From Macrostomum lignano (lineage: Eukaryota), in contig NIVC01001232.1 of NCBI GenBank assembly GCA_002269645.1, forward strand, positions 20,393 to 84,392: a DNA stretch of 64,000 nucleotides, given 5' to 3'. Under the pieces are notes generated by a model that was given only the letters and a program-made list of their open reading frames with translations, did not search any database and was not told where the DNA came from. Shown piece by piece: positions 25,770 to 63,820 of the stretch. A program made the translations under genes and the position numbers. Position 1 is the stretch's first letter. Every line of letters begins with the position of its first letter.

Positions 25770-26794
25770 TCGGTGGGCGCGAAGCCATTCGAGAATGGGA
25801 GAAGGAGTGCGCGCGATGCAGAAGGCAAAAAGCAGGACCGGAGGTGCAGCAGATGGCGCCGCTGCCAGAGGCCAGGCTGAAGAACTCTCTCCGAGCGTTC
25901 AGCTTTGTGGCAGTCGACTTCGGTGGTCCGTTTGAAACGGTACAAGGACGCGGAAGACGGCGAACGAAGAGGTATTTGGCCCTGTTCACCTGTTTGGAGA
26001 CGAGAGCCGTGCACCTAGAGATGGCGTATAGCTTGGATTCTGACTCGTTTCTGAATGCTTTCGCGCGCATGATCAACCGTAGAGGCCGGCCACTCGAAGT
26101 TTACTCGGACAACGGCGGCAACTTTGTCAAAGGCGAGCGAGAACTACGAGAATTCGAAAACGAGCAGCAGAACAAAATCCAGAGAGCGGCAGCTGAGCGC
26201 GGTATCAAGTGGCGCTTCCAGCCTCCGTCGGCGCCCCATTTCGGCGGCGCCCACGAAGTTATGGTTCGCGCCGCTAAGCGAGCTGTGCGCGCCATCCTTA
26301 GCAACGCTGACATCACCGACGAAGAGCTGCATTCCGCCTTCACAGGTGCGGAAGCGCTCATCAATTCCAGGCCGTTGACATACCAAACCAAAAGCCCAAA
26401 GGACGACACGCCGTTGACGCCAAACCATTTCTTGCATGGACAACTGGGTGGTGACTTTGCTACGGAAGTCTCGACCGAGATCAGCCGCGACCCGCGCCGG
26501 CGGTGGCGACGTGTCCAAGAGCTGGTGCGGCACTTCTGGCACCGATGGCTGCGTGAGTGGGTGCCAAGACTCAACGCCAGATCCAAGTGGGTCAAGGAGC
26601 AGCCGGATCTCGCCGTCGGCGACATCGTCTTGGCGCTACGAGCGGATGCGCCTCGAGGACACTGGCCGCTCGGGCGAGTTCTCGAGGTATTTCCTGGACG
26701 AGACGGCCATGTGCGCGTGGCCAAGGTGCGGACTGGCGGTGGGACAGTGCTGCGACCCGTGACGAAGTTGTGTGTGCTGCAGCGAGGTGAATAG
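25757..26794 (+). CDS. BEL/Pao integrase (out of frame with Pol, N-terminally deleted)
   Basis: QFWVIGGR..CARC, VDFGGPF, YSDNGGNF, APHFGGAHE, INSRPLT, HWPLGRV. The His-His half of the HHCC motif is missing. Confidence 0.9.
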   Translation, partial: QFWVIGGREAIREWEKECARCRRQKAGPEVQQMAPLPEARLKNSLRAFSFVAVDFGGPFETVQGRGRRRTKRYLALFTCLETRAVHLEMAYSLDSDSFLNAFARMINRRGRPLEVYSDNGGNFVKGERELREFENEQQNKIQRAAAERGIKWRFQPPSAPHFGGAHEVMVRAAKRAVRAILSNADITDEELHSAFTGAEALINSRPLTYQTKSPKDDTPLTPNHFLHGQLGGDFATEVSTEISRDPRRRWRRVQELVRHFWHRWLREWVPRLNARSKWVKEQPDLAVGDIVLALRADAPRGHWPLGRVLEVFPGRDGHVRVAKVRTGGGTVLRPVTKLCVLQRGE

Positions 26795-36288: not shown

Positions 36289-39046
36289 ATGGCAGCTGCA
36301 ATGCAAAAAACTACCTCCAAGTCATACAAGTGCACCATTTTGATCATCGGGTTCGTAGCTTACCTGATAGCCGACAGCTCTTACAACATCAGCGGGCTGT
36401 TCTATGCCGCCCACCTGGAGGCTTTTCCGCAGCAGACTGGCCTGCTCGCCGTCGTCTACGGCATGACCTATGGCGCCGGCCAGCTCATGTCGCCGCTCAT
36501 GGCGCTGCTGCTGCGCTCTCAGGGCGAGAAGCGAGTCGCCGTCGGCAGCTCGGTCTGCATGTTCGCCGGCTATGCGATCAGCTACTTTGCCTCTGATGCC
36601 CGCCTGCTGTTGCCCACCTTCGGCCTGATGGTGCCGCTGGCCGCGGAGGGCCTGTACTTCTTCCCCATGACGCTGCTGGCGCACAACTTCGATGGGCGAC
36701 TCACCTTGGCCAGCGGAGTCGTTGCCAGCGGTTGCGGCGCCGGTCTGCTCATGTCGGCTCCAATCACGCAGCTGCTCATCGGCAGCCTCACTTGGCGTGG
36801 CGCCGCACTCGTGCTGGGCGCAGCGGCGCTGAACGCAGGCGCGCTGGCGCTGCTGATCCGGCCGAGGGTGCCAGCGAGTCGCGACCTACCATTGGAGGAG
36901 GTGCCATTGGAGGTGGCGTTGGAGGCCGGCAAAGGCGAGGACAACGCGGCCGCGGCAGGTCGAGGCCGACTCGCTCGGACGGTGGAACTGCTGCGGATCT
37001 GCGGTCCGGATACAGCGTTATTCTACTTTGCTGCTCTTCTTCAGGCAAGAGACAGGACTAAAGCTTTCAACTGTTTCAACTGATGCTTTGACCTTGAACG
37101 TGCATTCTAGGTGGTGTCTGACGCAGTTAGCCTGATAATACATGAACATGTATATATTGCACTAGTTTTCTATGCCGCATTGATTTCAAACTGTTCCAAC
37201 AGACATTCAGCATGGTGACGGCCATCAACTTCGTCCCCGTGATGGCCAGCGAGCTCTCCGTCCCAGAGTCCCGCATCGCCCTGTACCCAGCCGGCTACGG
37301 TGCCGCCTTCACTATTGGCAACCTGGCCTTTGGCTACCTGGGAACCCGGCTGGAGCCGTTCCTGGTCGACTCGGCCAGTCTGTTTGTCTCCGCCGTTCTG
37401 ACTGGCATCCTGCCAGCGTGCGTGCGGGTCTCCGAGGCGCTGGGCCTGGCCGTTTACTGCGGCATGGGCGCCTGTCAGGTAAGAAGTGTTGTGGTACAGC
37501 AACCGAATTTTACAGGCGTAGGGTAAACTGGGTTAATTTTGACCACCGGTTAAGGCCCGTTAACTGGAACTGATTAGTTGATAATTAATTAGATTCGTCA
37601 GGTTATACCGACGCAGATGGTGCGAATGAGAACAGCTAAAGGAACAGGGGGGGTCTTTCTCGAAAGCAACTTACGATCGACCATAGACGTAAGTTGGGTA
37701 AGCTACACTTACGGGTTGCTCGAAGGGCTCGCAAGTTAGCTATGCGTAAGATTGATCGCAACTTTACGAGTTCGTAACTTTGCGCAAAAGACTGTTTCTC
37801 GAAACGTTCGTATGTCTATGGTCTTTCGTAAGGTTGATCTTAACCCTACGACTGCTCGGTATCAATCGTAAGACGCACATAAGCACTAATCGCATAGTAC
37901 GTGAAGCTTTAGTCAAGCCAAGTCAAGTTAAACTTTATCGAAGGGTCTTTCTCGAAAGAAACTTACGATAGACTAAGTAAAGATATTTGCAGATTTATGA
38001 CCATAGACATGCAACTTTTCGTTTCAGATACGACTTACGAACAGCGTAAGCCACGCAAAGTCTAAGTGAGTTTTGAGAAAGCGTCTTACGACTGAACTTA
38101 CGCTACACGTAAATTTCTTTCTTACGATCTAACTTACCATAGAACTTACGTGAGTTTTGAGAAACACCCCCTGAGGGCAGAATGGAAATTAAGCAAAATG
38201 ATGGGTGAGAAGTGATCGCCAAGGCCAGCGCTAGGAGCACTTATGTACAGCAAGGTATTACAATTTTGTTTTTGTTGATCTCCGAAAGTTGCATGAGTCG
38301 CAAATTCAATAAAATCCAAAATCTTACGCTTGAAAGCACTTGGCACTTTCCATTAGACTCTCGTTGCATTTTTTCGATTAGCCATTTCTATAGTTTAGAT
38401 TGACGTTAAAATTACATTCGTAACAAACTTGACCCTGCAGGGCGGCCGGTACGCACTGATGGTCAGCCTGATCAAGCTTGCGGTCGGCCTGCAGCACTAC
38501 GAGATCTGCACTGGACTCTACGTGGCCATGTTCTTTTTCGGCTCGTTTCCTGCGCCCTTTCTCGGTCAGTGGCTGCGCAGACAGCACGGCGACTATTCGG
38601 CAGCGTTCCAACTGGCTTCAGGGGCGTTCGCAGCCGCGGGACTGGCCACCCTGGCCGCCTGGGCGTTGCAGCCGCGACGCCGTTGGCGGCAAGGACGGCG
38701 CGAACTGCAGAGTCTGGCCGATGCGGATGCGAATGCGGATGCGAATGCAGATGCGGATGCGGAAGCGGATGCGGATGCGAATGCGGATGCGAATGCAGAT
38801 GCGGATGCGGATGCGGATGCGGATGCGGATGCGAATGCGGATGCGGATGCGAATGCGGATGCGAATGCGGATGCAAATGCGGATGCGAATGCGGATGCGG
38901 ATGCGGATGCGGATGCGGATGCAAATGCGGATGCAAATGCGGATGCGAATGCGAATGCGGATGCGAATGCGGATGCGGATGCGGATGCAAATGCGGATGG
39001 AGACTTCAGGTCACTGTTTTTCTGCAAAGATGCTCATCCGACGTAA
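36289..39046 (+). CDS. Monocarboxylate transporter family (SLC16/MCT, MFS), ~545 aa; exons 36289-37044, 37203-37478, 38441-39046
   Basis: [56 protein letters not shown]. Intron 1 is GC-AG and intron 2 GT-AG, both phase 0. Confidence 0.85.
37645..38173. mobile_element. MITE-like element (PIF/Harbinger-like ends) in MCT intron 2
   Basis: Imperfect TIR CAGGGGGGGTCTTTCTCGAAAG / TTTTGAGAAACACCCCCTG, with repeated CTTACG motifs and an internal TIR copy at ~37943. No clear TSD. Confidence 0.55.
38718..38998 (+). repeat. Coding hexamer microsatellite (GCGGAT/GCGAAT)n, ~47 units, encoding an (A-D/N)n tail
   Basis: In frame within MCT exon 3, before the stop at 39044-39046. Confidence 0.9.
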
Positions 39047-42076: not shown

Positions 42077-43483
42077 ATGGCTAGCAACATGAGCAACGTC
42101 ACAGAGGAGGTGACGAGGCTGCACCTGGTGGACCCGCTGACTGGTCTACGCAGAATGCTCTACCTGGTGACGCCGTGGGAGTCCAGCGCTCCGGAGGTGG
42201 ACAAAGTACCCAAATTTGTTGACGAAGCCATCCCGTACTTTCTGCTGCTCATATTTATCGAATATATAATCCTGGTGTGCAAGGGCCGCAGAAAGGCCAT
42301 TCCTCTTAACGACAGCATTGGCTCAGTCAGCGGCGGCTTGATCTCCCAGCTGCCACTGCTGCTGGCGCGCAGCATCGAGGTGTCCAGCTACATCTGGGTG
42401 TACGATCACTGGCGCATTGCTGACGTACCCTCGGACTCGGCCTGGGCTTGGCTGGCCGCCCTGGTCGGGGTGGACTTCTGCTACTACTGGGTGCACAGAA
42501 CCGCGCACGAGGTGAACTTGTTCTGGTCTGGCCACCAGATGCATCACAGCTCGGAGCGGTACAACCTCACCACTGCGCTGCGCCAATCCGTGCTACAGCG
42601 TTACTTTAGCTGGTTTATCTACCTACCACTGGCTCTGGTGCTGCCGCCATCTCTGTTTGCCGTGCACATCCAGTTCAACCTGCTGTACCAGTTCTGGATC
42701 CATACCGAAGTGATCAAGAAGCTGCCTGCGCCCATCGAGTACGTGATGAACACGCCGTCGCATCACCGAGTCCACCACGGACGCAATGCCTACTGTATTG
42801 ACAAGAACTATGGCGGCACTTTCATTCTGTTTGACCGGATTTTCGGCACTTTTCAGGCTGAGAAGGACGACGAGCCGCCTGTGTACGGCCTCATCCATCC
42901 GGTGAACACCTTTGACCCCATAGAGCTGCAGTTGTTCCATCTGAAATACGTGCTCGGCCTGTGGCGCCAGCACAGCAACTGGACGGACAGATTCCGCGCC
43001 TTCTTCTACGGACCCGGCTGGCAGCCAGGGACACCTCGGCTCGGCACTGACGATTTCCCGGAAATCGAAAACCCGGTGCAGTATCACAATCCCCAGGTGC
43101 CCGTCTGGGTGACTGCCTACGCCACCCTGCACTTCTTCGCTATCCACGTTGTCTACATCTACCTGGCTAGCAACCGGCAGAGCCTGTCTGTGCCGGCCGT
43201 GGCTGTCAGCTGTGCGCTGATCCTCCTCACCCTGTACTCCATCGGCCGCCTGATTGACGGCTTCCCCCGCTCGGCCGCCGCCATCGAGCTGATGCGCTGC
43301 ATCGTTGTGACTACTCTGTGCGTCGCCCTGCACAGCCGGCAGCCGCCAAGCTGGCTGACTGGCCTTGCTCAGGGCCTGCACCTGCTGTCCTCCGGTCTTT
43401 GGCTCTACATGCGAAGCCGAGATCGGAAGCAGCAAAAGGAGCGGTTAAGCATGTCAAAGAAGAATTCGGCCAAAGTGGAATGA
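42077..43483 (+). CDS. AGMO: Alkylglycerol monooxygenase (TMEM195), intronless, 468 aa
   Basis: DFCYYWVHRTAHEVN, GHQMHHSSERYNLTTALRQS, QFWIHTE, NTPSHHRVHHGRN, DKNYGGTFILFDRIFGTF, WQPGTPRLG. Confidence 0.95.
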   Translation: MASNMSNVTEEVTRLHLVDPLTGLRRMLYLVTPWESSAPEVDKVPKFVDEAIPYFLLLIFIEYIILVCKGRRKAIPLNDSIGSVSGGLISQLPLLLARSIEVSSYIWVYDHWRIADVPSDSAWAWLAALVGVDFCYYWVHRTAHEVNLFWSGHQMHHSSERYNLTTALRQSVLQRYFSWFIYLPLALVLPPSLFAVHIQFNLLYQFWIHTEVIKKLPAPIEYVMNTPSHHRVHHGRNAYCIDKNYGGTFILFDRIFGTFQAEKDDEPPVYGLIHPVNTFDPIELQLFHLKYVLGLWRQHSNWTDRFRAFFYGPGWQPGTPRLGTDDFPEIENPVQYHNPQVPVWVTAYATLHFFAIHVVYIYLASNRQSLSVPAVAVSCALILLTLYSIGRLIDGFPRSAAAIELMRCIVVTTLCVALHSRQPPSWLTGLAQGLHLLSSGLWLYMRSRDRKQQKERLSMSKKNSAKVE

Positions 43484-46630: not shown

Positions 46631-48724
46631 ATGTCTCGCCTTCATTTAGAGAGAGACAGTAAAATCAAAAGCATCCGCATCGATCCCGCTGATACTACTA
46701 ACGACGACTCCGTCCAACCCAAGTCAGCAAAACGACCTTCCTCTACCGAAGCCGTCGCTGACCCCGATCTCAGCGCTTGCAACCTCCTCCGGCCCTACTT
46801 TACCTTTTTCTCTTGGATCGGCTTGCTACCCGGCCTGCTGACCGGCTGGCGGCGGCGCCTGGTCACCACCGTTGCCGCAGTCTTAAGCTTGTTGGCGTTC
46901 GTTGAGGCAGCCGCAATCAGTATTCAGCAGCTAAGGATGTCGCGGGAACTTGACGCCAGGGCGATGCTCTCGACAACGCTGATCACTTTTTATCTTTACT
47001 GCAGCTTTTCGCAGTCCATATTAGTGTACTTAAGCTGCGTTGGTCGCTTTGTCGATTTCTTTAAATTGGTCGACAACGCGCTGACAAGCCTCAAAGACTG
47101 GGGCGCGCCCGGCAACTGCGTTGACAAGCACTGGGAGAAAAGCTGCCGTCGGCACCGTCTCTTGTTCTGGGGTGGCACCGCCGGCGTGCTGGCGAACTCT
47201 GTGTTCTCAGCCGTGCTCATTCTGCTGCTGCCGCGCCGGAATCCGTTCGAATACAGTCTGCGCTTGCTGGAGCCGGAGGAAGCCCTGGCGCCAGTCTACC
47301 AGATTGAGTGGCGTTACATTTTCTGGCGAGTCGGCATCTCACTGCTGCTGGTAGTGAAGACCTGTGTGTGGATCTACTCAATGCTGATCTTCCTCATCAT
47401 AGCGGCGATCGTCGCCTCCGTCTTCAGCGCCTATGACATCGTTCTGGACAAGCAGCTCGCCCAGGCTGACTCGTCTGGTGTAGGCGAAGTTTCTGGCAAG
47501 CAGGTTCGAGTCTGCAGGCGACACTTTGTAAACCTACTGGACCTGCTGAAAGCTGCTGACGGTCTAGTCAGCAAGTACCTGTCTGCCACCTTCATGTTCG
47601 GCCTTACCTGTCCGATCCTGCTGCTGTACTATCTAATCCAGTTTCCTGAGTCGCGACAGGAGACTCTGTTCCTGTTCATCATGCTGTTCTGGGTGGCCAT
47701 GGGATTCGCGTTCCTGTTCGTTCCGGTGGCAGTGGCCGGGTACATCAGCGATCTGGCAAGTCTAACTCAGCAATCAAAGCTTGCTATTTTTTGTTCTGTT
47801 CTTTGTTTTGTTTTGGTCTCAAAATTGAATTTCGGGCATTTATTAAAAGCCACCAAACCAAACCTACATTTTCAGACAAAGAGACCGAAGCAAAATATCC
47901 AGAGGCTCACGGTTGTGCAAGAGCCACAAGAAGTACGATCTTTTTATCAGTGCCTAATGTGAAGCATTTAACACCGCAATTCTACCGTGTTACTAAACTC
48001 CGATCTTGCAGCTCGTCCAGTTCGTAAACATTTTATCCTCGGAAGACAATGGCCTGACCTGCTTCTCCTTATTCGTAATCAAGAAATCTTTGGTTCTAGA
48101 AGTGAGTAGCCTTTTGATCTCGTGATTTAATAATTTAATAATTGATTTTTATAGCTGCTCTAGGGCAGATGTGCAGCCGACAGCTCAGCCTCGCAGCTAC
48201 GGCTGTTTAGTCCATCCAAGGACTGGGGGGTCGCCACACACACCATCAATTACCCTACAGCTAATGCTGGCACCCATTTTACAGCTGGGTGAACTGAAGC
48301 AATGCTGAGTTAAGTGCCTTGCTCAAGGACACAAATTGTTCCGAGTGGGTCGAGAATCGAAATGGTCTACGAGCGTAGACTCCAGCGAGTGTAAAACGTC
48401 CTTATGAACAAACAGACAGTCCCGTATTAACTGCACTCAGTGTGCTTAAGAAACGCATGTTTGAGCAAGTAATCTGTAGTTGGCAGACCTACATGTATAG
48501 GTAGAAGCAATCAAATTAATTAAATGATGGCTGATCCCAATGGTGAGTGGAGCACTATGGTAGTTGCCATGCAAATAATTGCTTCTTTCCCGACTCATTC
48601 ATTTCAGCTTGCTGGTCTATTTCTGACCTATTTTTTCCTGCTTGTGCAGATGAAGCCGCCAGATTGCAACTGCTGCAACCAAACATCTGCTGGGGCTACG
48701 AATGGCAACGCCACGACTGGCTGA
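46631..48724 (+). CDS. Gustatory receptor-like (GRL) 7TM ion-channel family protein, ~462 aa; exons 46631-47755, 47876-47932, 48012-48101, 48608-48724
   Basis: Multiple TM segments. The spliced C-terminus reads ..LVQFVNILSSEDNGLTCFSLFVIKKSLVLE|LAGLFLTYFFLLVQM and contains the TYhhhhhQ motif. There are three phase-0 introns (GC-AG, GT-AG, GT-AG). Confidence 0.85.
48167..48365 (-). mobile_element. tRNA-derived CORE-SINE-like element in GRL intron 3
   Basis: CCCATTTTACAGCTGGGTGAACTG..GTTAAGTGCCTTGCTCAAGGACACA resembles the CORE-SINE reverse strand. B-box-like TTCGATTC on the minus strand at ~48352-48362. A second copy lies at 39754. Confidence 0.55.
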
Positions 48725-49386: not shown

Positions 49387-52300
49387 ATGACTTTAACAAG
49401 CTTTCTTGATGTGAAAGCCGATCAACCAAAATCAGACGAAACGAAGATCGACCTGCTGAAAAGCCTAAATGTTAATGCCATCAATGTTGGAAATGTTACT
49501 GGCCAAGAACATCCAGCTACTGTCGTAAGTTTCTAGATGTAATTTGAATTATTATGGTGTGTTTTTTCTTCTGTCTTGGTCATGTTTATTTCCTTATGGC
49601 TCATTTTATTTTTTTCATATCCTAGATGGCTAGGCGCCTAGTAGGCCCTATAAATAGCAACTAGCCCTAGCCCCTATATAGTATATAGTCTAGAGGCCTA
49701 CCCAGCTAGGTAATATCATTTTTATTGTCTAGTTTAGAATTCAGCTGAATGATTAATGGACATAGGCCTAGTGCAAACAGTTAATGAAAGATTAACTTTA
49801 GGTTAGGCCCTAAATAAAAAACTTAAGCCTAGCTTAGCTAGACTCTATACTAGAGTCTAGACTTACATGGCAATGTCCTAGTTTCCTGCATTAAATTATT
49901 TTGACATTAAATTTTAATCAAATAAACCCAAATGAGTTTAACAAAATATACATTAGTAATAGTATAGCTTTTAACCTTTTTAAGCCTAAAGACAAATAGT
50001 TTATAAATTTAATAAAGATACTAGTGATAACCCATAGTCTGGAACTAGAATGTGGCCTTTATGGAAAATTCCAGTGTATTTTTTGCCCTCACTGACAATC
50101 TTGGCGTACTCTTAGTGTATTGAATTGTCAGGGTCAATATGAATTTTACACAGTTGGCATAAAAAATAGCCGAGTTCAGGGCTAATATAATTGTATAGTT
50201 AAATATCAACAAACAAAAGCTCTTTTAAAAATAATTGGAAACTAAAATAAAAAATATAAGGTAATTTAATGGGAAAAGTAAAATTAAAGCAAAGAATATC
50301 AGTTTTAGTAAAAAAAAATAGCATGCTAAAGTTTAGTAAAACTTTTATTTCTAAAAATATATGTTCTTTAAAAAATTGGCATACAAATAACTCTGACCTT
50401 GGTGTAATTTTTTTAAATTTTACATCAGTGTAAAATTGAAAAAACATGAATTTTCATTCTAGCATATGCCTGCCATAATCTGGACTATGGGTGATAAGTG
50501 ATAACCTTTTTGACTCCCACTTTAGCATTTAGCAAGTTTCTCTAGCACTGACTATCCCATAGCCACAAGAAGTACTTTGGCAACTTCCTGTACTAGATGA
50601 TCTATTACTCTATTATATTGTATATATAATAGGCCTCCAGTTTTTAAAACAATTTCCTAGAAAAAGTTGTTTTTCAAAAATGTATTACTGTTGTTATACT
50701 ATGCAAATATTAAAAATATTTCTTATATGCAAAATATTCTAAATAATCTATGTATTAATACTTTGTTTTAAATAATAGAAAAATATTTACTATAAAAAAG
50801 AGTTAGCTAGGAGCCAAAATTATTAACCTTTTCTTGTTTGTTGGTCTTGTACCATTGTTTTGAACATTGATCAAGCTTCAAATCAGCCTTGGGCTTATTA
50901 TCACTCATGTTACTTTTTTCAAATAATAGATAGTGACATAAGAGTTACCCCAAGATTGAGAGTTCAGTCTATTCTCAGAAAATGAGACATCCAAATCTAG
51001 GATCTGAGAAATTGCCTTTTTTATGTTTTTACTTGTTTGCTTGTCTAGAAATACTGACAATAAGACTTGTTCTATCTATAGTACTTGATAATCCAAAGGA
51101 AATGCCAGTTATAGCCTTGGTGCTATACTAGATTTGACATCAAACCTATACTATATATGCTATGTCAAAGTCAATTATAAGAGAGCACTACTAGATATAC
51201 TTAAGGATATATTTATATTTCAATCCTTGGAAAATTTGCAAAGGATAAATGAGCCATAATGGATAATAAATGTTTGGCTATCAGTAGGCTTGAAGTATAT
51301 CCTGGTTTTAAGACTTGCTATTGCCATTGTGGTCTTAGAGGATGATAATATCTAGAAAATTGACCTCTATGTTGTTATAGCTCAGTTGCAGCAAATGTTT
51401 GGGTCAAAGATGTTTAAGTATTGATGGAACTAGACTAGCTCTACCTGCTATACATTACAAGATCTCAATGTAATGAAGCCACAGTTTATGCTTCTGCAAG
51501 CTAGTCTCTAGGCCTCTTTTCTTTCAATAGCCCATGTAGATTTTGTAGTATCTAGGCACAAATGACTTCCCCATGGTAGTATCTTTCATATGCTAGGAAT
51601 TATGTATGATTCCTATATAATAATTGGAAATTATTATGGGCCAAATTGGTTAATAATTGGCCAGAACTACTTGGAAAATAAAAAGAATAAAAAACCCTAA
51701 ATCAATATAACTTTTTAAACCTAAGGCTCAAAGCCAACATTTGGAAGTCAATATAATGATTAATGGTATGAAATTTTTTTCTAAAATGAAATTCCTTTCT
51801 CAAATTATAGTTATTAGCTAGAATAACAGGTTTGAAACTCCTATTTTTTATTAGTAGTACTTTTCCTACTTAAAAGCACCTAGAAAATAGTCATAGTGAA
51901 CCTTGAATCTAGAAATGAAAAATGCATAGACACTTTGTATGAAATTGTAAGAAAGAAATATAGATTCTAGAATATAGTATTTTTTACACTATATAATTAA
52001 AGACCGGCTGAGAACTAAGAAACTCGTTAAAGAGAGTTAGAGAAGGAGAGAGGTCACAGCATATTAAGTTCCAAATTGAGTTCTAAAAATGGCAATCAGT
52101 TTCAAGCCTTTAGGCTCTTCATCAGGCCAAAAAATAACATATAGTGTTTGTTTTAAATTAAGATTCTTTTCACTAATATTTTCAAGAATTTCTATAAGCT
52201 TTTCTGACATTTTGAAGCATTCACTAAGCATTCATTGTATAAAGTTTCAGAGTATAATTAAAGTCATATAGTGATATTTCAATACAACAAAAAACTAACT

Positions 52301-55300
52301 CAATACCTAAAGGATCTAATAAAATCCTTGTTAAGGATGGGGAGGGGGGTTACATTTCAAATACAAGAGTGTCAACACATCTTTATTTGATAAATAATAT
52401 AGTAAATAAGCAGTAAATAAATAACACTGCTAACTGCAGTTGTGTCAATATCAATGCTAATATACAAGGTGTATTCAAAAAGTTCTTTTCAGTCCTCTGG
52501 CATTTACTTTTAGAAAGCTTTGTAAACAAAATTTTAGCGATTTCACCAGGTTATGTCTATGCCCTAAATGTTCATAGGGTTTGTTTGCAACTATGTCTGA
52601 GCAGCGAACCTTTCTATCAGCTACCACTCATTTTTTGGCCATGGTGGAATCATTTTCAAAACAAGACGTTCGAAACTTGATGAAGTTTCCGTTTCTGCAA
52701 GGAAAAAAGCCGCCGGATATGTTTAGGGAGCTTCAGCAAGTGCTTGGCAACTGTGCACCAACTGAGCAGACAGCGAAAATGGTACCGGCTATTCGCTGAG
52801 GGAAGAGAGAGCGTTGTGGACAGCTGGGATCCTGAGACAAAGGCCCAGTCTGCCGAATGGCTTCCAGCACATTCTCCAAAACCTCAGAAGGCCATCAGGA
52901 AGCAAGGTGCGCTGAAGATCATGCACGTCATGTTCTTTGATTCCCAAGGAATCCTGCTGAACTGGGCACAAGGAACCACCGTCAATGGGGACTACTACAA
53001 GTGGATTCTGCAGGAGTTGCGCCCAGCAACATGCTTGGGCGCAACCTTGGGATTCACTCGGCCGTTTCTATTGGCAACACACACATGTATGTCGCTATTG
53101 GACAGAATAGTAGTCACGTGACTGCTCTCAGCCAATAGTGACTTACATGTGTGTGTTGCCTATAGAAACGGCCGGGTGATTCCCAAGGTTGCGCATGTAT
53201 GCCCAGCAATACGAAAGAGGCTATCACTGACTCTCTTAGATCTGCTGGAAACCGGCGTGATCCTGCTGCACGACAATGCGCCAGCACATCGCAAGCACAA
53301 CGTCGTGGAACTCTTGAGCAAATAGGGCTGGAAAAAGCTCCAACATCTACCCTATTCGCTTGATTTGTCACCGTGCGACTTTTTCTTATTTCCATTTGTG
53401 AAGAGGCACCTGAATTTGTTTGACCAACCGAGTGAAAAATATTAGCTTAAGAGTATACTGATAGTTGTACCTGCATCTGAACATTAAATATGAAAATTTC
53501 CAATGTTTTGTTCTCTAGATGACAGAATTAGATTTTATGCGATCACACTACTTGCAGTAGGAAACCGCTAACAAATTACGAACAAATTATTTTCACAAAC
53601 TACTCCAGAATACGAGTTCTGTACTATTTTTAGTATTATTTTCCATATTTAGTAAATTTATTAATTCATTAGTCCTTTGTGCTTTGGGTTTAAATATTTT
53701 CTACTGTATTTTTTACTTTTTTATAAAAACTGGCCGTCACATTTCTGCTATTCTGGGCGTTTCCCCCGCTCTCTATTCTCTCACTGCCTTCCCGTGTGTA
53801 GCTGGGGCGCCGCCCTTGTTATTATTACCTTCCATCTATCGCCTAGTCTAGCCAGACAACTCGCTATATGGAGTAGTTTAGCAAACTTTCTATACCTCTC
53901 TTTAGTTAGTTACCTTCAGCGGTCTGTCTAGATACTACAGCCACTACGGTATGAACTTTGTAATATGCCCGGCAGTCTTCGCACTGTAAAACTATATTCA
54001 CCATTACACCATTACCCACCATACCCACATACCCATTAAAATACGCTTCGCTGCCTGCTGTCCTGAAATATATGATGTCACTCCCCGTGGAATATATGAT
54101 GTCACTCCCTGTGGAATATATGATGTCACTCCCTGTGGAATATATGATGTCACTCCCTGTGGAATATATGATGTCACTCCCTGTGGAATATATGATGTCA
54201 CTTCCTGTAGAATATATGATGTCACTCCCTGTGGAATATATGATGTCACTCCCTGTGAAATATATGATGTCACTCCCTGTGGAATATATGATGTCACTCC
54301 CTGTGGAATATATGATGTCACTCCCCGTGGAATATATGATGTCACTCCCTGTGGAATATATGATGTCGCTTCCTGTAGAATATATGATGTCACTCCCTGT
54401 GGAATATATGATCTCACTCCCCGTGGAATATATGATGTCACTCCCTGTGGAATATATGATGTCACTTCCTGTGGAATATATGATGTCACTCCCTGTGGAA
54501 TATATGATGTCACTCCCTGTGGAATATATGATGTCACTCCCCGTGGAATATATGATGTCACTCCCTGTGGAATATATGATGTCACTTCCTGTAGAATATA
54601 TGATGTCACTCCCTGTGGAATATATGATCTCACTCCCCGTGGAATATATGATGTCACTCCCTGTGGAATATATGATGTCACTTCCTGTGGAATATATAAT
54701 GTCACTCCCTATGGAATATATGATGTCACTCCCTGTGGAATATATAATGTCACTCCCTGTGGAATATATGATGTCACTTCCTGTGGAATATATAATGTCA
54801 CTCCCTGTGGAATATATGGTGTCACTTCCTGTAGAATATATGATGTCACTCCCTGTGGAATATATGATGTCACTCCCTGTGGAATATATGATGTCACTCC
54901 CTGTGGAATATATGATGTCACTCCCTGTGGAATATATGATGTCACTCCCTGTGGAATATATGATGTCACTCCCTGTGGAATATATGATGTCACTCCCTGT
55001 GGAATATATGATGTCACTCCCTGTGGAATATATGATGTCACTCCCTGTGGAATATATGATGTCACTCCCCGTGGAATATATGATGTCACTCCCTGTGGAA
55101 TATATGATGTCACTCCCCGTGGAATATATGATGTCACTCCCTGTGGAATATATGATGTCACTCCCCGTGGAATATATAATGTCACTCCCTGTGGAATATA
55201 TGATGTCACTCCCTGTGGAATATATGATGTCACTCCCTGTGGAATATATGATGTCACTCCCTGTGGAATATATGATGTCACTCCCTGTGGAATATATGAT

Positions 55301-58300
55301 GTCACTCCCTGTGGAATATATGATGTCACTCCCTGTGGAATATATGATGTCACTCCCTGTGGAATATATGATGTCACTCCCTGTGGAATATATGATGTCA
55401 CTCCCTGTGGAATATATGATGTCACTCCCTGTGGAATATATGATGTCACTTCCCGTGGAATATATGATGTCACTCCCCGTGGAATATATGATGTCACTCC
55501 CTGTGGAATATATGATGTCACTCCCTGTGGAATATATGATGTCACTCCCTGTGGAATATATGATGTCACTCCCTGTGGAATATATGATGTCACTCCCTGT
55601 GGAATATATGATGTCACTCCCTGTGGAATATATGATGTCACTCCCTGTGGAATATATGATGTCACTCCCTGTGGAATATATGATGTCACTCCCTGTGGAA
55701 TATATGATGTCACTCCCTGTGGAATATATGATGTCACTCCCTGTGGAATATATGATGTCACTCCCTGTGGAATATATGATGTCACTCCCTGTGGAATATA
55801 TGATGTCACTCCCTGTGGAATATATGATGTCACTCCCTGTGGAATATATGATGTCACTCCCTGTGGAATATATGATGTCACTCCCTGTGGAATATATGAT
55901 GTCACTCCCTGTGGAATATATGATGTCACTCCCTGTGGAATATATGATGTCACTCCCTGTGGAATATATGATGTCACTCCCTGTGGAATATATGATGTCA
56001 CTCCCTGTGGAATATATGATGTCACTCCCTGTGGAATATATGATGTCACTCCCTGTGGAATATATGATGTCACTCCCTGTGGAATATATGATGTCACTCC
56101 CTGTGGAATATATGATGTCACTCCCTGTGGAATATATGATGTCACTCCCTGTGGAATATATGATGTCACTCCCCGTGGAATATATGATGTCACTCCCTGT
56201 GGAATATATGATGTCACTCCCTGTGGAATATATGATGTCACTCCCTGTGGAATATATGATGTCACTCCCTGTGGAATATATGATGTCACTCCCTGTGGAA
56301 TATATGATGTCACTCCCTGTGGAATATATGATGTCACTCCCTGTGGAATATATGATGTCACTCCCTGTGGAATATATGATGTCACTCCCTGTAGAATATA
56401 TGATGTCACTCCCCGTGGAATATATGATGTCACTCCCTGTGGAATATATGATGTCACTCCCTGTGGAATATATGATGTCACTCCCTGTGGAATATATGAT
56501 GTCACTCCCTGTGGAATATATGATGTCACTCCCTGTGGAATATATGATGTCACTCCCTGTGGAATATATGATGTCACTCCCTGTGGAATATATGATGTCA
56601 CTCCCTGTGGAATATATGATGTCACTCCCTGTGGAATATATGATGTCACTCCCTGTGGAATATATGATGTCACTCCCTGTGGAATATATGATGTCACTCC
56701 CTGTGGAATATATGATGTCACTCCCTGTGGAATATATGATGTCACTCCCTGTGGAATATATGATGTCACTCCCTGTGGAATATATGATGTCACTCCCTGT
56801 GGAATATATGATGTCACTCCCTGTGGAATATATGATGTCACTCCCTGTGGAATATATGATGTCACTCCCTGTGGAATATATGATGTCACTCCCTGTGGAA
56901 TATATGATGTCACTCCCTGTGGAATATATGATGTCACTCCCTGTGGAATATATGATGTCACTCCCTGTGGAATATATGATGTCACTCCCTGTGGAATATA
57001 TGATGTCACTCCCTGTGGAATATATGATGTCACTCCCTGTGGAATATATGATGTCACTCCCTGTGGAATATATGATGTCACTCCCTGTGGAATATATGAT
57101 GTCACTCCCTGTAGAATATATGATGGCACTCCCTGTGGAATATATGATGTCACTCCCTGTGGAATATATGATGTCACTCCCTGTGGAATATATGATGTCA
57201 CTCCCTGTAGAATATATGATGGCACTCCCTGTGGAATATATGATGTCACTCCCTGTGGAATATATGATGTCACTCCCTGTGGAATATATGATGTCACTCC
57301 GAGTGAAATATATGATGTCACTCCCTGTGGAATATATGATGTCACTCCGAGTGAAATATATGATGTCACTCCCTGTGGAATATATGATGTCACTCCCTGT
57401 GGAATATATGATGTCACTCCCTGTGGAATATATGATGGCACTCCCTGTGGAATATATGATGTCACTCCCTGTGGAATATATGATGTCACTCCGAGTGAAA
57501 TATATGATGTCACTCCCTGTGGAATATATGATGTCACTCCCTGTGGAATATATGATGGCACTCCCTGTGGAATATATGATGTCACTATAACGTTTGCTTT
57601 CCAGTCGCAGGGGTTATCATTAATTCCTATTTATTCCCCCCCCATAATTCTTCACCAGCGACCTCCCACCTACTCAGTGGAGTATGTCGAGCTTTACAAC
57701 CACCGTGCGGCCAGGCGCCGCCGGCTGTGCCGCATCTTCGCCTGGCTGCTGGCTGTGTTCCTCCTGCTGGACATTGGCGTCGTGCTGTACATCGGGCTGC
57801 GCATGCGCCAGCACCAGCGCAACGGTTCGGATTCGGCCGACTCGACTGTCAACTGCCGGATCCGATTTCGCCAGGCCGACGGGCGGGTTGAAAGCCGAAG
57901 CGAGCTGGTTAAAACTGACGGCTCCGGCCGCGTACTGATGCAGCCGTCATGGGACTCGGACGGCCGGCCAACCGTGCTGCACAACCAGCTGAGAGGCTTC
58001 ACTCTGCTGCGCGCCCCGTCCGCTCAGCTGTGCTTTGTGAAGCGCTCGACCTGGCGCAGGCACGACTGGGCCAGTAATGTTGTCATCTGGGCCAAGGTGG
58101 GGCTACTGGGTTGCTTACTGCGTTCAGTGTATCTGCGTACGGCAGCTGGGCCGCCTCTCCGTCACACCTTTCTATTTCACTTCTTACTCTCGTATCTCAA
58201 TCTCACCTCTCCCTCTCGCATCTCAATCTATTCTCACTTCTCCCTCTCGCCTTTCCCTCTCGCATCTCAATCTCACCTCTCTTTCTCGCCTCTCCCTCTC

Positions 58301-58385
58301 ACATCTCAATCTCACCTCTCCCTCTCGCATCTCAATCTATTCTCACTTCTCCCTCTCGCCTCTCCCTTTCGTATCTCAATCTCAC

Positions 58386-58462
<77 letters not shown>

Positions 58463-61400
58463 CTCTCCCTCTCCCTCTCGCATCTCAATCTCACTTCTTC
58501 TTCTCGTCTCCCTCTCACTTCTTCCTCTCGTCTCTCCCTCTTGCCTCTCCCTCTCACCTCTCACTCTCATCTCCCTCTCACTTCTCTCTCCTCTCTCCCG
58601 CCTCTCCATCTCACCTTTTCATCTCACCTCTTACCTCCATCTCACCTCACTCTTGAATCTCAACCTCACCTCTCCCTCTTAAATCTCCCTCTTTATTCTC
58701 CCTCTCAGCCCCGCCCTATCTTCCCCTTATCCCCCCGTCTCTCTCAATCTTGTTTGAGTAATTTTAGACATATTTTATAATTTTAGAAACACAAAAAGGC
58801 CCCACAAAATCCGGGAGCTTAGCTATTCGAATATACTATTTTTAGGAACAGAAAAAGGGCTTAGATACTGTCGAACAAGTAAACAATTAGTCAAGAAAAA
58901 AGCCCGATAGCTGCGGGACTATGGTGTGTAAAAGTAACAAGGGTGTTAATTAGAAAGCCTAGTATAGTAATTGGCAGCTGAGGATATTCAGCAGAATCTT
59001 TGTACGAACTTCACGAATAGTGTACGGCTTTGACTACGCAAATCGAAATATAGAAATCCAGAAGTGCATTTTGCAGGTACGAGTAAACATGTTACCGTTT
59101 TTTATACACAAAAAGTATAATCATGCAAAAATGATTGGAGCACTACCTACCCGGATTAGTAAAGCAGATTTATAACAATATCGTATCCTCACCGCACCGT
59201 AGGAACAACACGAAGTCTCGGCCAAGACCATCCAATACGTCCGATTGGCTGTCCGCTATCCTCCAATCAGCGAGCGCGATCTCATGTCCTACGGCAGCGA
59301 GGCCTGGCACATGTGCCGCGGCTACCAGACCTACCTAGTCCAGCCAATCATCTTCCGCTACACCTTCAAGTCAAAGTCTGTTGACGCTGGCAAGGAGGAC
59401 TCTTCTTCGACTGATGAGGAGCAGAAGGAATGCCCTATGCTGGACTGCGTGAACCCCTGTCCTGGAAATCAGTACCTGCACGATGAGAACGGCTGTCGCA
59501 CCTGCAACTGCGGCACCGGTAAGCTGCTCTCATAAATCTGTCACTGACTCATAGATCTGTCACTGACTCTCGTTGATCTGTCACACTCTCATAGATCTGT
59601 CACAGACTCTCTTTGATCTGTCACTGACTGTATTTGATATGTCACTGACTCTCTTTGATCTGTCACTGACTCTCTTTGATATGTCACTGGCTCTCATGGA
59701 TATGTCACTGACTGTCGTTGATATGTCACTGGCTCTCTTTGATATGTCACTGGCTCTCATGGATATGTCACTGACTGTATTTGATATGTCACTGACTCTC
59801 TTTGATCTGTCACTGACTCTCTTTGATATGTCACTGGCTCTCATGGATATGTCACTGACTGTCGTTGATATGTCACTGGCTCTCTTTGATATGTCACTGG
59901 CTCTCATGGATATGTCACTGACTGTCGTTGATATGTCACTGGCTCTCTTTGATATGTCACTGGCTCTCATGGATATGTCACTGACTGTCGTTGATATGTC
60001 ACTGGCTCTCTTTGATATGTCACTGACTATCTTTGATATGTCACTGACTCTCGTTGATATGTCACTGGCTCTCTTTAATATGTCACTGACTCTCATTGAT
60101 ATGTCACTGACTCTCATAGATCTGTCACTGACTGTATTTGATATGTCACTGACTCTCTTTGATCTGTCACTGACTTTCTTTGATATGTCACTGACTCTTA
60201 TAGATCTGTCACCGACTCTCATCGATATGTCACCAGCTCATTGATTTCCGAGAAGCAGTTTTTCAACTAACAATCTGTGCTTAACCTGCCACGGAGGAAT
60301 AACTTAATTAGATGGCTCTCACATATAGTGCACTCAAAAGCATAAGGTTAATTATGCTGCAAATCTTCTGTTAGCAAAGCATCGCCTATTGTTTCCATGG
60401 TCTCCCCTCGCGCTACTCGAATGCTCTCTGTTAGCTAATTACTGGAGTGCTTAATGTTACTAGTCTATCGATTCTAATGTATATAAAATTCTGAGCTACA
60501 CTGAGCTAAAAATAATTCAGATGTGTTACTGAATTGGAGCTCTGCATTGCATTGTCTGCACCCAGACTGCACTCCCGCTGCGGGACCGGCAGCTTATTAA
60601 ATTTTACTGCCGTACTCAGCTCGCTGACTAGCAACTGCTGCACCAAGAGTAATCGAAAATGTTTAAAATAGTCCCAACAAGTTTACTGCAGGACCCCTAG
60701 TTAGGCTATACTCCCAGATCCTCAGTTACTGGGCCAGCCTCCCAGATCCAGTTTCTGGGCCAGCCTCCCAGATCCTCAGTTGCTGGGTAGGCCTCCCAGA
60801 TCCTCAGTTGCTGTGTCAGCCTACCAGATCCTCAGTTGCTGGGTAGGCCTCCAAGATCCTCAGTTGCTGGGTAAGCCTCCCAGATCCTCAGTTGCTGGGC
60901 CAGCCTCCCAGAGTGTCAGTTGCTGGGCCAGCCTCCCAGATCCTCAGTTGCTGTGCCATCCTTCCAGATCCTCAGTTGCTGTGCCAGCCTCCCAGATCCT
61001 CAGTTGCTGTGCCAGCCTTCCAGATCCTCAGCTGCTAGGCTAGCCTCCCAGATCCTCAGTTGCTGGGCCAGCCTCCCAGATCCTCAGTTGCTGGCCAGCC
61101 TCCCAGATCCAGTTTCTGGGCCAGCCTCCCAGATCCTCAGTTGCTGTGCCAGCCTCCCAGATCCTCAGTTGCTGTGCCAGCCTTCCAGATCCTCAGTTGC
61201 TAGGCCAGCCTCCCAGATCCTCAGTTGCTGGGCCAGCCTCCCAGATCCTCAGTTGCTGGGCCAGCCTCCCAGATCCTCAGTTGCTGTGCCAGCCTCCCAG
61301 ATCCTCAGTTGCTGTGCCAGCCTTCCAGATCCTCAGTTGCTAGGCCAGCCTCCCAGATCCTCAGTTGCTGGGCCAGCCTCATAGAGTGTCAGTTGCTGGG

Positions 61401-61908
61401 CCAGCCTCCCAGATCCTCAGTTGCTGGCCAACCTCCCAGATCCTCAGTTGCTGGGCCAGCCTCATAGAGTGTCAGTTGCTAGGCCAGCCTCCCAGATCCT
61501 CAGTTGCTGGGTAAGCCTCCCAGATCCTCAGTTGCTAGGCCAGCCTCCCAGATCCTCAGTTGCTAGGCCAGCCTCCCAGATCCTCAGTTGCTAGGCCAGC
61601 CTCCCAGAGTGTCAGTTGCTGGGCCAGCCTCCCAGATCCTCAGTTGCTAGGCCAGCCTCCCAGAGTGTCAGTTGCTAGGCCAGCCTCCCAGATCCTCAGT
61701 TGCTCTCGCTAGAAAATAATGCCTTTCTCTCCCTCTCCTCGCAGCCTCCAATGATGCCGAGCCTGGAAACCGTGACAAACGCGCCGTCCCCGAGGTGCCG
61801 CAGCCTCGGCAGCAGAAGCCGCGCCGCCGGCAGCTGCAGATCGACGAAGGCGTCCTGCCAGGCGAGGACGGTCGCAGCGTTCACATTGTCGACGTGATCG
61901 AGTTTTGA
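49387..61908 (+). CDS. ITM2/Bri-like type II membrane BRICHOS protein with antistasin-like module, ~351 aa; exons 49387-49524, 57659-58096, 59203-59518, 61745-61908
   Basis: Basic RRRR then a single TM. BRICHOS-like VLHNQLRGFTLLRAPSAQLCFVKR and WHMCRGYQTYLV (cf. ITM2B LCHDKETYKL). CPMLDCVNPCP..DENGCRTCNC, then RDKR. GT-AG junctions in phases 0,0,1 keep an open frame. Exon 1 is less certain. Confidence 0.78.
50031..50491. mobile_element. MITE with TIR CCCATAGTC(T/C)(G/A)GA
   Basis: CCCATAGTCTGGA at 50031 and TCTGGACTATGGG ending at 50491, flanked by the direct repeat TGATAA. A related end is seen at ~1597-1609. Confidence 0.6.
52463..53410 (+). mobile_element. Decayed mariner (Tc1/mariner DDD) transposon, internally deleted, 3' TIR not seen
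   Basis: 5' TIR-like TACAAGGTGTATTCAAAAAGTTC; HTH LMKFPFLQGKKPPDMFRELQQVLG; DPETKAQS, FFDSQGIL, LLHDNAPAH, PYSLDLSPCDFFLFP. Confidence 0.9.
53030..53200. mobile_element. 171-bp palindromic mini-element nested in the mariner
   Basis: Hairpin 53039-53194 centred on GTCACGTGAC. 9-bp direct repeat GCCCAGCAA at 53021-53029 and 53201-53209. Confidence 0.8.
54066..57587. repeat. 24-bp minisatellite (GATGTCACTCCCTGTGGAATATAT), ~147 copies, 3.5 kb
   Basis: Direct periodicity; homogeneous centre with variant units at both edges. Confidence 0.98.
58180..58750. repeat. Pyrimidine-rich degenerate repeat containing (TC)~36 at 58389-58460
   Basis: Visible low-complexity CT tract in BRICHOS intron 2. Confidence 0.95.
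59528..60240. repeat. 21-bp minisatellite (GATATGTCACTGACTCTCTTT), ~34 copies
   Basis: Starts about 10 nt after the exon-3 donor; direct periodicity. Confidence 0.95.
60708..61705. repeat. 28-bp minisatellite (GCCAGCCTCCCAGATCCTCAGTTGCTGG), ~35 copies
   Basis: Ends about 40 nt before the exon-4 acceptor; direct periodicity. Confidence 0.95.
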
Positions 61909-63204: not shown

Positions 63205-63820
63205 GCAGTAACTCTCAGTGCCTCACAGTCACTCTCAGTGCCTCACAGTCTCTCAGTGCCTCACTCAGTCACTCTCTTAGTGCCTCACTCAGTCTATCAG
63301 TGCCTCACTCAGTCACTCTCTTAGTGCCTCACTCAGTCTATCAGTGCCTCACTCAGTCACTCTCTTAGTGCCTCACTCAGTCTATCAGCGCCTCACTCAG
63401 TCACTCTCAGTGCCTCACTCAGTCTATCAGCGCCTCACTCAGTCACTCTCAGTGCCTCACAGTCTCTCAGTGCCTCACTCAGTAACTCTCTCAGTGCCTC
63501 AGTCTCTATCAGTGCCTCACTCAGACACTCTCCCAGCGCCCCACTCAGTCACTCTCCCATTGCCTCACTAAGTCACTCTCCCATTGCCTCACAAGTCACT
63601 CTCCCATTGCCTCAGTCACTCATGGTGCCTCACTCAGTCACTCTCCGATTGCCTCACTTAGTCTCTCTCAGTGCCTCACTCAGTCACTCTCCGATTGCCT
63701 CACTTAGTCTCTCTCAGTGCCTCACTCAGTCACTCTCCGATTGCCTCACTTAGTCACTCATAGTGCCTCACTCAGTCACTCTCCGATTGCCTCACTTAGT
63801 CTCTCTCAGTGCCTCACTCT
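63205..63820. repeat. Degenerate ~22-bp minisatellite (AGTGCCTCACTCAGTCACTCTC)
   Basis: Direct periodicity; lies between a donor-like CAG|GTGAGT (~62865) and an acceptor-like CTGCACAG (~63825). Confidence 0.85.

Follow-up and report, generated by a model that had tools for sequence, protein, structure and literature searches.

The window analyzed here, a 64,000-nucleotide stretch of nuclear DNA from the flatworm Macrostomum lignano, contig NIVC01001232.1 (assembly GCA_002269645.1, positions 20,393 to 84,392 of the forward strand), carries on its + strand a gene for a 351-amino-acid (aa) protein that combines a likely BRICHOS domain, a six-Cys antistasin-type module, and a short acidic tail behind a predicted convertase site. 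The product is identical to NCBI PAA70496.1 (BOX15_Mlig014342g1), a "hypothetical protein" of M. lignano, and 99% identical to two more annotated M. lignano copies, giving three intact 351-aa copies in total. The locus is a four-exon M. lignano gene, already annotated and uncharacterized, and not a chance open reading frame (ORF).

Gene structure and layout of the protein

A preliminary description of this DNA, made from its letters, had proposed a spliced gene of three + strand exons (57659-58096, 59203-59518, and 61745-61908). All three are present with GT/AG borders and join in frame, and their translation contains the PPTY motif, one hydrophobic segment, the six-Cys module, RDKR, PRRR, and the terminal ...VHIVDVIEF. 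The model lacked the start codon, having missed a first coding exon (49387-49524) that sits 8 kb upstream of exon 2. Exon 1 encodes the cytosolic N-terminus in AT-rich, poorly conserved sequence. Exon 2 encodes PPTY, a juxtamembrane RRRR, the transmembrane segment, a Cys112-bearing linker, and the first half of BRICHOS, and exon 3 encodes the second half of BRICHOS, a Ser/Asp/Glu-rich linker, and the six-Cys module. The gene models of M. lignano derive from a genome-guided assembly of RNA sequencing (RNA-seq) reads (StringTie/TACO/TBONE, TransDecoder) (PMC5730564) and thus give indirect transcript support to the junctions; no expression data for this gene were found in the supplements of two M. 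lignano papers. The features of the gene are as follows.

49387..49524, + strand: coding exon 1, codons 1-46, with ATG at 49387 and a GTAAGT donor; matches the N-terminus of P0001/P0033, annotated M. lignano proteins
57659..58096, + strand: coding exon 2, codons 47-192, with an AG acceptor at 57657-58 and donor AAG/GTGGGG
57662..57673, + strand: PPTY, a PPxY motif on the cytosolic side, residues 48-51
57728..57799, + strand: signal-anchor/transmembrane segment CRIFAWLLAVFLLLDIGVVLYIGL, residues 70-93, the sole Kyte-Doolittle peak (2.5)
57971..58096, + strand: first half of BRICHOS, in exon 2, placed by Pfam PF04089 and the hhalign register against ITM2B
59203..59518, + strand: coding exon 3, codons 193-297 and base 1 of codon 298, with acceptor ...ccgtag and donor gtaagc
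59203..59334, + strand: second part of BRICHOS, residues 193-236, holding Cys230 in the motif WHMCRGYQTYLVQ
59431..59511, + strand: antistasin-type six-Cys module CPMLDCVNPCPGNQYLHDENGCRTCNC, residues 269-295, with Val275 at the P1-equivalent position
61745..61908, + strand: coding exon 4, from the remainder of codon 298 through codon 351, with acceptor ...ctcgcag and a TGA stop at 61906-61908
61771..61782, + strand: RDKR, residues 307-310, the sole R-x-[K/R]-R site on the lumenal side
61783..61905, + strand: predicted released C-terminal peptide of 41 aa, residues 311-351, cleavage being predicted from the motif
61819..61830, + strand: PRRR, residues 323-326, a further basic site, confined to the M. 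lignano copies
61831..61905, + strand: conserved acidic tail QLQIDEGVLPGEDGRSVHIVDVIEF, residues 327-351, 60% identical to the orthologue P0002
62076..62081, + strand: AATAAA polyadenylation signal, 168 nt downstream of the stop

A second genomic copy on NIVC01000352.1 (locus L001) is collinear with the window. Non-coding DNA is 93-97% identical between the two loci, exon 2 is 99.5% identical, and exon 1 is conserved no better than the flanking DNA. The two coding sequences are separated by 10 synonymous and 5 non-synonymous differences, and the resulting dN/dS of 0.15 between genomic copies means that the gene is under purifying selection.

A more distant orthologue, P0002 (266 aa), was recovered from Logan contig L002 (1,023 nt, SRR30276812). 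It is 46% identical to the window protein by BLASTP (52% over aligned residues), at a divergence that has brought synonymous sites close to saturation (pS about 0.7). The transmembrane segment, BRICHOS, the six-Cys module, the basic site, and the tail all lie in one uninterrupted ORF of this contig, which indicates that the exon joins in M. lignano are right. All ten Cys positions are common to both orthologues (Cys70 in the juxtamembrane region, Cys112 in the linker, Cys171 and Cys230 in BRICHOS, and six in the knot formed by the module). Identity by region is 90% for the transmembrane and juxtamembrane part, 44% for the linker, 45% for BRICHOS, 61% for the knot, 17% for the spacer that follows, and 60% for the last 25 residues. 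The start of the contig is pyrimidine-rich (positions 1-110), and its 5' 98 nt end ...tttgTAG just before a conserved VEYVELYNH; this stretch looks like intron sequence, so that the contig would be genomic or unspliced. The two downstream M. lignano introns are absent from the contig sequence.

Residues 1-69, the predicted cytosolic part, precede the hydrophobic segment, with HRAARRRRLC and its RRRR stop-transfer cluster immediately before it. The net charge is +4 before the helix versus +1 after it, a balance compatible with an N-in, type II orientation, and together with the single Kyte-Doolittle peak it bears out the type II layout with one transmembrane segment that had been proposed earlier. 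The protein follows the four-region BRICHOS layout, comprising the transmembrane segment (70-93), a linker (94-150), BRICHOS (151-236), and a C-terminal region (237-351). The last of these is 115 aa long, within the range of 29-149 aa known for BRICHOS proteins (PMC2751770).

The most conserved part of the protein is the stretch around the membrane anchor, where residues 57-96 are 90% identical to P0002. Asp84 lies in mid-membrane, and the constraint on this anchor is unusually strong for a signal anchor, given that BRICHOS is just ~45% identical. Intramembrane cleavage is known for Bri2. It might be speculated that a near-invariant membrane segment with a mid-membrane Asp has a sequence-specific role in the bilayer, whether in partner binding or in intramembrane cleavage.

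The BRICHOS domain and the six-Cys module

Pfam BRICHOS (PF04089), which has a curated gathering cut-off of 25 bits, matched the window protein with 24.3 bits (E 3.7e-5), the second M. lignano copy with 24.1 bits (E 4.2e-5), and P0002 with 18.1 bits (E 3.2e-3). The match covers profile positions 6-90 of 91, and BRICHOS was the sole Pfam family in that region in every protein tested. Superfamily-wide conservation in BRICHOS is limited to one Asp and two Cys (PMC2751770). The Cys pair, Cys171 and Cys230, is kept in both orthologues and aligns with Cys164 and Cys223 of ITM2B; in BRICHOS domains these two Cys, one on strand 4 and one on the short helix, make up the intradomain disulfide. At the site that corresponds to the conserved Asp (ITM2B Asp148), as placed by a weak hhalign alignment, an Asp is present in the orthologue and Asn155 in M. 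lignano; Asn occupies this position in 2.7% of single BRICHOS domains (PMC9627735). The significant E-values, the near-full-length match in both orthologues, and the conserved Cys pair agree with the BRICHOS call of the preliminary description at scores just below threshold, and membership in the superfamily is likely on these grounds.

For comparison with ITM2B, 24 ITM2B sequences were aligned, and the profile was compared by profile-profile hhalign with our family alignment (A1). The hhalign match spanned the whole domain in the expected register (Cys171/Cys164, Cys230/Cys223, and Asn155/Asp148), and in a column-shuffle control, the real score was reached by 5 of 300 shuffles. The bulk of the signal came from the motif after the second Cys (CRGYQTYLVQ versus CRGKETYKLQ). 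Comparisons by hhalign with single human ITM2B and proSP-C sequences were not significant, and the alignment with proSP-C was limited to the membrane segment. An exhaustive profile search over 1.84 billion representative proteins returned no ITM2 protein. At this level of similarity, placing the protein in the ITM2 subfamily is no more than a lead.

AlphaFold2 was run twice, with the M. lignano protein and then the orthologue as target, each time on a three-sequence alignment. In the low-confidence models that resulted, Cys171 and Cys230 are located in a strand and a helix, and the elements follow the order of four strands, a helix, a strand, and a helix with the second Cys (b-b-b-b-a-b-a). 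This order is compatible with BRICHOS as described in PMC9714404, whose fold is a beta-sheet with a helix on either side, in models too weak to carry weight. A Foldseek search of the first model against the Protein Data Bank (PDB) returned nothing below E 0.1, a result that is uninformative.

The six-Cys module between BRICHOS and the cleavage site shares with antistasin repeats (PF02822) the spacing C-x4-C-x3-C-x11-C-x2-C-x-C and the conserved Tyr/Phe, Asp, and Gly-Cys; the group compared comprised leech antistasin, hirustasin, bdellastasin, and guamerin, Hydra antistasin, and CRIM1-like proteins. Pfam Antistasin covers positions 1-26 of 26 with 16.3-17.9 bits, below its curated cut-off of 21.2 bits. 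The profile search found the two family members as the only full-length relatives and returned 11 further matches, which cover only family positions about 251-317. Pfam Antistasin was present in nine of nine such outside matches scanned, eight of them over the cut-off and several with 5-10 repeats. The closest were crinoid proteins, uncharacterized or CRIM1-like, and the module is 62-67% identical to the crinoid repeats. In a 31-module alignment, none of the six Cys varies, and Asp18 and Gly21 are conserved at 90% or more; searched against the PDB, the profile of this alignment matches antistasin (E 8e-6), bdellastasin, guamerin, hirustasin, and gigastasin, the matched entries including 1SKZ, 1C9P, 3BG4, and 1HIA. 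A leave-out hidden Markov model (HMM) with the family members excluded gave 38.6 and 45.3 bits, and the best of 2,000 shuffles reached 7.6 bits. A phmmer search of the lone module against the PDB gave just non-significant matches to the mGluR5 cysteine-rich domain. Judged by the leave-out HMM, the PDB profile matches, and the identity of the outside matches, the earlier placement of the module in the antistasin class is sound despite the sub-threshold Pfam scores.

The inhibitory function that had been attached to this fold is another matter. Directly after the second Cys, the PDB alignments show Arg34 in antistasin, Lys34 in bdellastasin, Met36 in guamerin, and Arg30 in hirustasin, which are the P1 residues of these inhibitors. 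The equivalent residue is Val275 in M. lignano and Ile in the orthologue, whose loop is one residue shorter; neither orthologue has Arg, Lys, or Met here, and the loop length is not constant between them. The short 25-27-residue repeat is known from Hydra antistasin, whereas the leech inhibitor domain has ten Cys (PMC7851590), and the function of such short repeats outside leeches is not known (PMC7851590). No ten-Cys leech domain was found in the window protein, which has six Cys in the module and, as the nearest upstream Cys, Cys230 of BRICHOS. The short repeat, the Val/Ile residue, and the shorter loop of the orthologue cast doubt on a serine-protease inhibitor and, with it, on a conserved canonical inhibitor loop; a basic-specific convertase is unlikely to be inhibited. 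The knot was also considered as an inhibitor of the convertase acting at the neighboring site and was rejected, the P1-equivalent residue not being basic.

Processing, rival explanations, and relation to known families

Both orthologues have a single lumenal R-x-[K/R]-R site, which occupies the same position, between knot and tail, and at which RDKR310 aligns with RRRRR. Other parts of the preliminary description proved to be specific to M. lignano, namely, the PRRR site with the pyroglutamate (pyroGlu) 25-mer that it would release and the acidic linker, since the Ser/Asp/Glu-rich linker is deleted in the orthologue. The predicted 41-mer has an isoelectric point (pI) of 5.6, and the 25-mer has a net charge of -5 and a pI of 4.05; the predicted product of the orthologue is 33 residues long with a net charge of -4. 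The tails have in common the core L-x-[IL]-DEGVLP-x-E-x-G-x-x-VH-x-[IV]-D-x-IEF, which both low-confidence AlphaFold models draw as two beta-strands. No Cys follows residue 295 in either orthologue, and the C-terminal Cys pair of the ITM2B type (Cys248 and Cys265) is absent from both.

Our leading interpretation, to which we give a probability of about 60%, is that the gene encodes a type II membrane proprotein that follows the plan of the ITM2/Bri branch within the BRICHOS superfamily and additionally carries an antistasin knot. The chain would insert N-in and keep its N-terminus in the cytosol, where PPTY may recruit Nedd4-type WW-domain ligases for post-Golgi sorting, by analogy with proSP-C, whose PPDY motif is a binding site for Nedd4 ligases (references cited in PMC8201155). 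BRICHOS would fold in the endoplasmic reticulum and shield the beta-prone tail. A furin-like convertase would then cut after RDKR310 and free the 41-residue peptide, which in M. lignano might be trimmed at PRRR326 to a 25-mer. Convertases cut known BRICHOS proproteins in this manner, freeing a short C-terminal peptide (PMC9714404; PMC2751770). BRICHOS and the disulfide knot would be retained on the membrane stub after the cut, the knot most likely as a rigid binding module or a non-trypsin-type inhibitor and not as part of the released product. The secreted system of chaperone, inhibitor-like module, and peptide envisaged in the preliminary description is not what such a cut predicts, as cleavage at RDKR would release the tail only and leave BRICHOS and the knot membrane-bound.

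The resemblance to the ITM2/BRI proteins (ITM2A/B/C; Bri2) and to invertebrate group A/group I BRICHOS proteins lies in the type II single-pass topology with a cytosolic N-terminus. Also shared are the conserved linker Cys before BRICHOS, the BRICHOS Cys pair, a local motif that follows the second Cys (CRGyqTYlvQ in this family, CRGKETYKLQ in ITM2B), and a short beta-prone C-terminal peptide placed behind a furin-type site. Unlike them, the window protein carries a six-Cys antistasin repeat between BRICHOS and the cleavage site, and unlike Bri23, its tail is strongly acidic and unrelated in sequence, with a predicted product of 41 or 33 residues versus 23. A tail without a Cys pair is shared with group A BRICHOS. 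proSP-C (SFTPC) is likewise a type II BRICHOS proprotein with a cytosolic PPxY motif (PPDY there, PPTY here) in which the transmembrane segment is the best conserved region; there, however, the transmembrane helix is the mature product and nothing follows BRICHOS, where the window protein has knot, cleavage site, and tail. In chondromodulin-1 and tenomodulin, too, a type II anchor is combined with BRICHOS, a furin site, and a C-terminal region containing a Cys-rich element, but in these proteins the Cys-rich domain follows the furin site and is the mature product, whereas here the module precedes the site and would stay with BRICHOS.

Several points weigh against this interpretation. All BRICHOS scores fall short of the Pfam gathering cut-off (24.3 versus 25 bits at best), the hhalign comparison with the 24 ITM2B sequences gave E 0.035 and a probability of 1.5%, which is not significant, and neither phmmer nor a profile search with the whole protein found a BRICHOS chain in the PDB. 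The AlphaFold2 models, with mean pLDDT of 41.5 and 44.3, are unreliable and cannot support the fold or docking of the hairpin. The C-terminal Cys pair that the tail lacks is found in nearly all BRICHOS families, all but invertebrate group A (PMC2751770). The orthologue contig begins inside an intron, so that PPTY could not be compared, and with two family members only, the conservation arguments rest on one comparison. Cleavage, topology, and chaperoning are all predicted, and inhibition is at most putative.

It is also conceivable, although unlikely, that the protein is an unprocessed membrane-anchored ectodomain in which the basic stretch serves as a flexible linker and the tail is a hairpin packed permanently on BRICHOS or the knot. 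Identity is lowest (17%) in the spacer that surrounds the basic site, RX[K/R]R motifs are no rarity where Arg is abundant, and AlphaFold models of most human BRICHOS proteins place the C-terminal peptide in the groove of BRICHOS face A (PMC9714404). Yet the sole lumenal basic site keeps its position within this diverged spacer and is stronger in the orthologue (RRRRR), and convertase processing is the rule in the superfamily (PMC9714404; PMC2751770). Less probable still is that the antistasin module is the effector, as a tethered or shed protease inhibitor with BRICHOS as its folding aid. In its favor, the module aligns end to end with the reactive-site part of antistasin, bdellastasin, guamerin, and hirustasin, the knot is better conserved than BRICHOS (61% versus 45%), and Met36 of guamerin is a tolerated non-basic residue at that position. 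These points are offset by the six-Cys repeat without the ten-Cys leech domain and by the lack of an established role for such repeats outside leeches (PMC7851590). The Val/Ile residue and the shorter orthologue loop also fit a conserved canonical binding loop poorly, and leech antistasin inhibitors differ further in having Arg, Lys, or Met where this single short repeat, set inside a BRICHOS proprotein, has Val or Ile.

BRICHOS-linked antimicrobial peptides are generally cationic. An arenicin-type precursor, in which BRICHOS chaperones a membrane-active beta-hairpin that furin frees for defense, had been raised as an analogy in the preliminary description and is very improbable for this gene. 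The polychaete precursors (arenicin, alvinellacin, nicomicin, and capitellacin) do come from other lophotrochozoan worms and show the same order of BRICHOS, basic site, and short predicted hairpin; they are signal-peptide prepropeptides whose products are disulfide-stabilized beta-hairpins. In the window protein, a signal anchor behind a long cytosolic N-terminus takes the place of a signal peptide, and the tail is Cys-free, with a net charge of -5 (pI 4.05) for M. lignano and -4 for the orthologue. This acidity argues against an arenicin-type membrane-active peptide, and we rejected the analogy on tail charge and Cys content. That the gene is an annotation artifact or a decaying copy in a repeat-rich, polyploid genome is scarcely credible. 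The introns are full of minisatellites and exon 1 is conserved no better than its flanks, as such a reading would have it, but it is contradicted by three intact 351-aa copies with dN/dS of 0.15, canonical splice sites, and RNA-seq-based gene models, and by an orthologue that is intact despite near-saturated synonymous divergence.

The architecture was unfamiliar to the author of the preliminary description, and the searches point the same way. In the literature search, BRICHOS was not found together with antistasin, nor BRICHOS with Macrostomum, and no mention of the three gene identifiers or of the sequencing run SRR30276812 was found. The largest BRICHOS survey consulted recognizes 13 domain groups, and a multi-BRICHOS precursor is the sole unusual architecture in its text. 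No other protein with both BRICHOS and antistasin was found among the 1.84 billion representatives, in a search that sees only knots or BRICHOS domains resembling this one. The architecture is real, apparently undescribed, and lineage-restricted, in a protein that databases already list as "hypothetical"; its domain calls are so weak that the family probably escaped existing BRICHOS surveys.

BRICHOS is studied as a natural anti-amyloid chaperone, and the known families differ chiefly in the client peptide that they escort. If our interpretation is correct, this family would place a second folded module between chaperone and client, and its client would be acidic and Cys-free, unlike Bri23, SP-C, and the antimicrobial hairpins of worms. 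A further proposal, which we advance tentatively and do not favor, is that this is a macrostomid-restricted BRICHOS family in which a knot has been fused between chaperone and client and which releases a Cys-free acidic hairpin as a new class of client, for example, a signaling peptide or a building block of functional amyloid, with the knot as regulator or docking module. M. lignano is tractable by transgenesis and RNA interference, so that function is testable in vivo. The practical weight of the family is limited by its two known members, its weak domain calls, and a function read from sequence.

Surroundings of the gene in the window

The region is gene-poor and repeat-rich, with exons of 57-65% GC separated by minisatellite-filled introns. 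A 24-bp minisatellite (AATATATGATGTCACTCCCTGTGG) at 54067-57586 accounts for 3.5 kb of the first intron (146.7 copies, 97% identical); several of its frames on both strands are free of stops, which gives rise to spurious ORFs of about 960-1240 codons. Each of the other introns and the 3' flank has a minisatellite of its own (58177-58616, 59539-60233, 60711-61704, and 63212-63819), the arrays consisting of CT-rich 13/26/109-bp units, 21 bp x 33, 28 bp x 36, and 24/46 bp x 14-28. These intron and flank arrays recur at the second genomic copy, with other copy numbers. The first intron also contains a mariner-type transposase remnant at 52684-53322 (Pfam Transposase_1, E 1e-7), which is split over at least two frames and is therefore decayed.

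Directly upstream of the BRICHOS gene, an uninterrupted 443-aa ORF with several hydrophobic stretches and no Pfam match extends over 46631-47962. It is preceded by a single-exon 468-aa ORF at 42077-43483 that is alkylglycerol monooxygenase-like (FA_hydroxylase and AGMP_C) and that is also found upstream of the L001 copy. A long GAC/GCA-type hexanucleotide repeat at 38700-39000, which would read as (DA/NA)n if coding, lies at the end of an MFS-transporter-like exon (MFS_1 match at 36289-37083). A BEL/Pao-type long terminal repeat (LTR) retrotransposon at 21372-26794 has open frames of 1465 aa (gag-like DUF1759, reverse transcriptase [RT], and Peptidase_A17) and 350 aa (integrase and DUF5641), and is possibly a recent element. 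Exons resembling dihydrolipoamide acyltransferase (lipoyl domain and 2-oxoacid_dh) lie at 16997-18574; the intron of this gene is a minisatellite that looks as if it coded for Pro/Ser, with frames open on both strands. Reverse transcriptase fragments (RVT_1) of non-LTR and LTR retroelements lie in the 5' part of the window, at 4304-5417 and 7262-7750.

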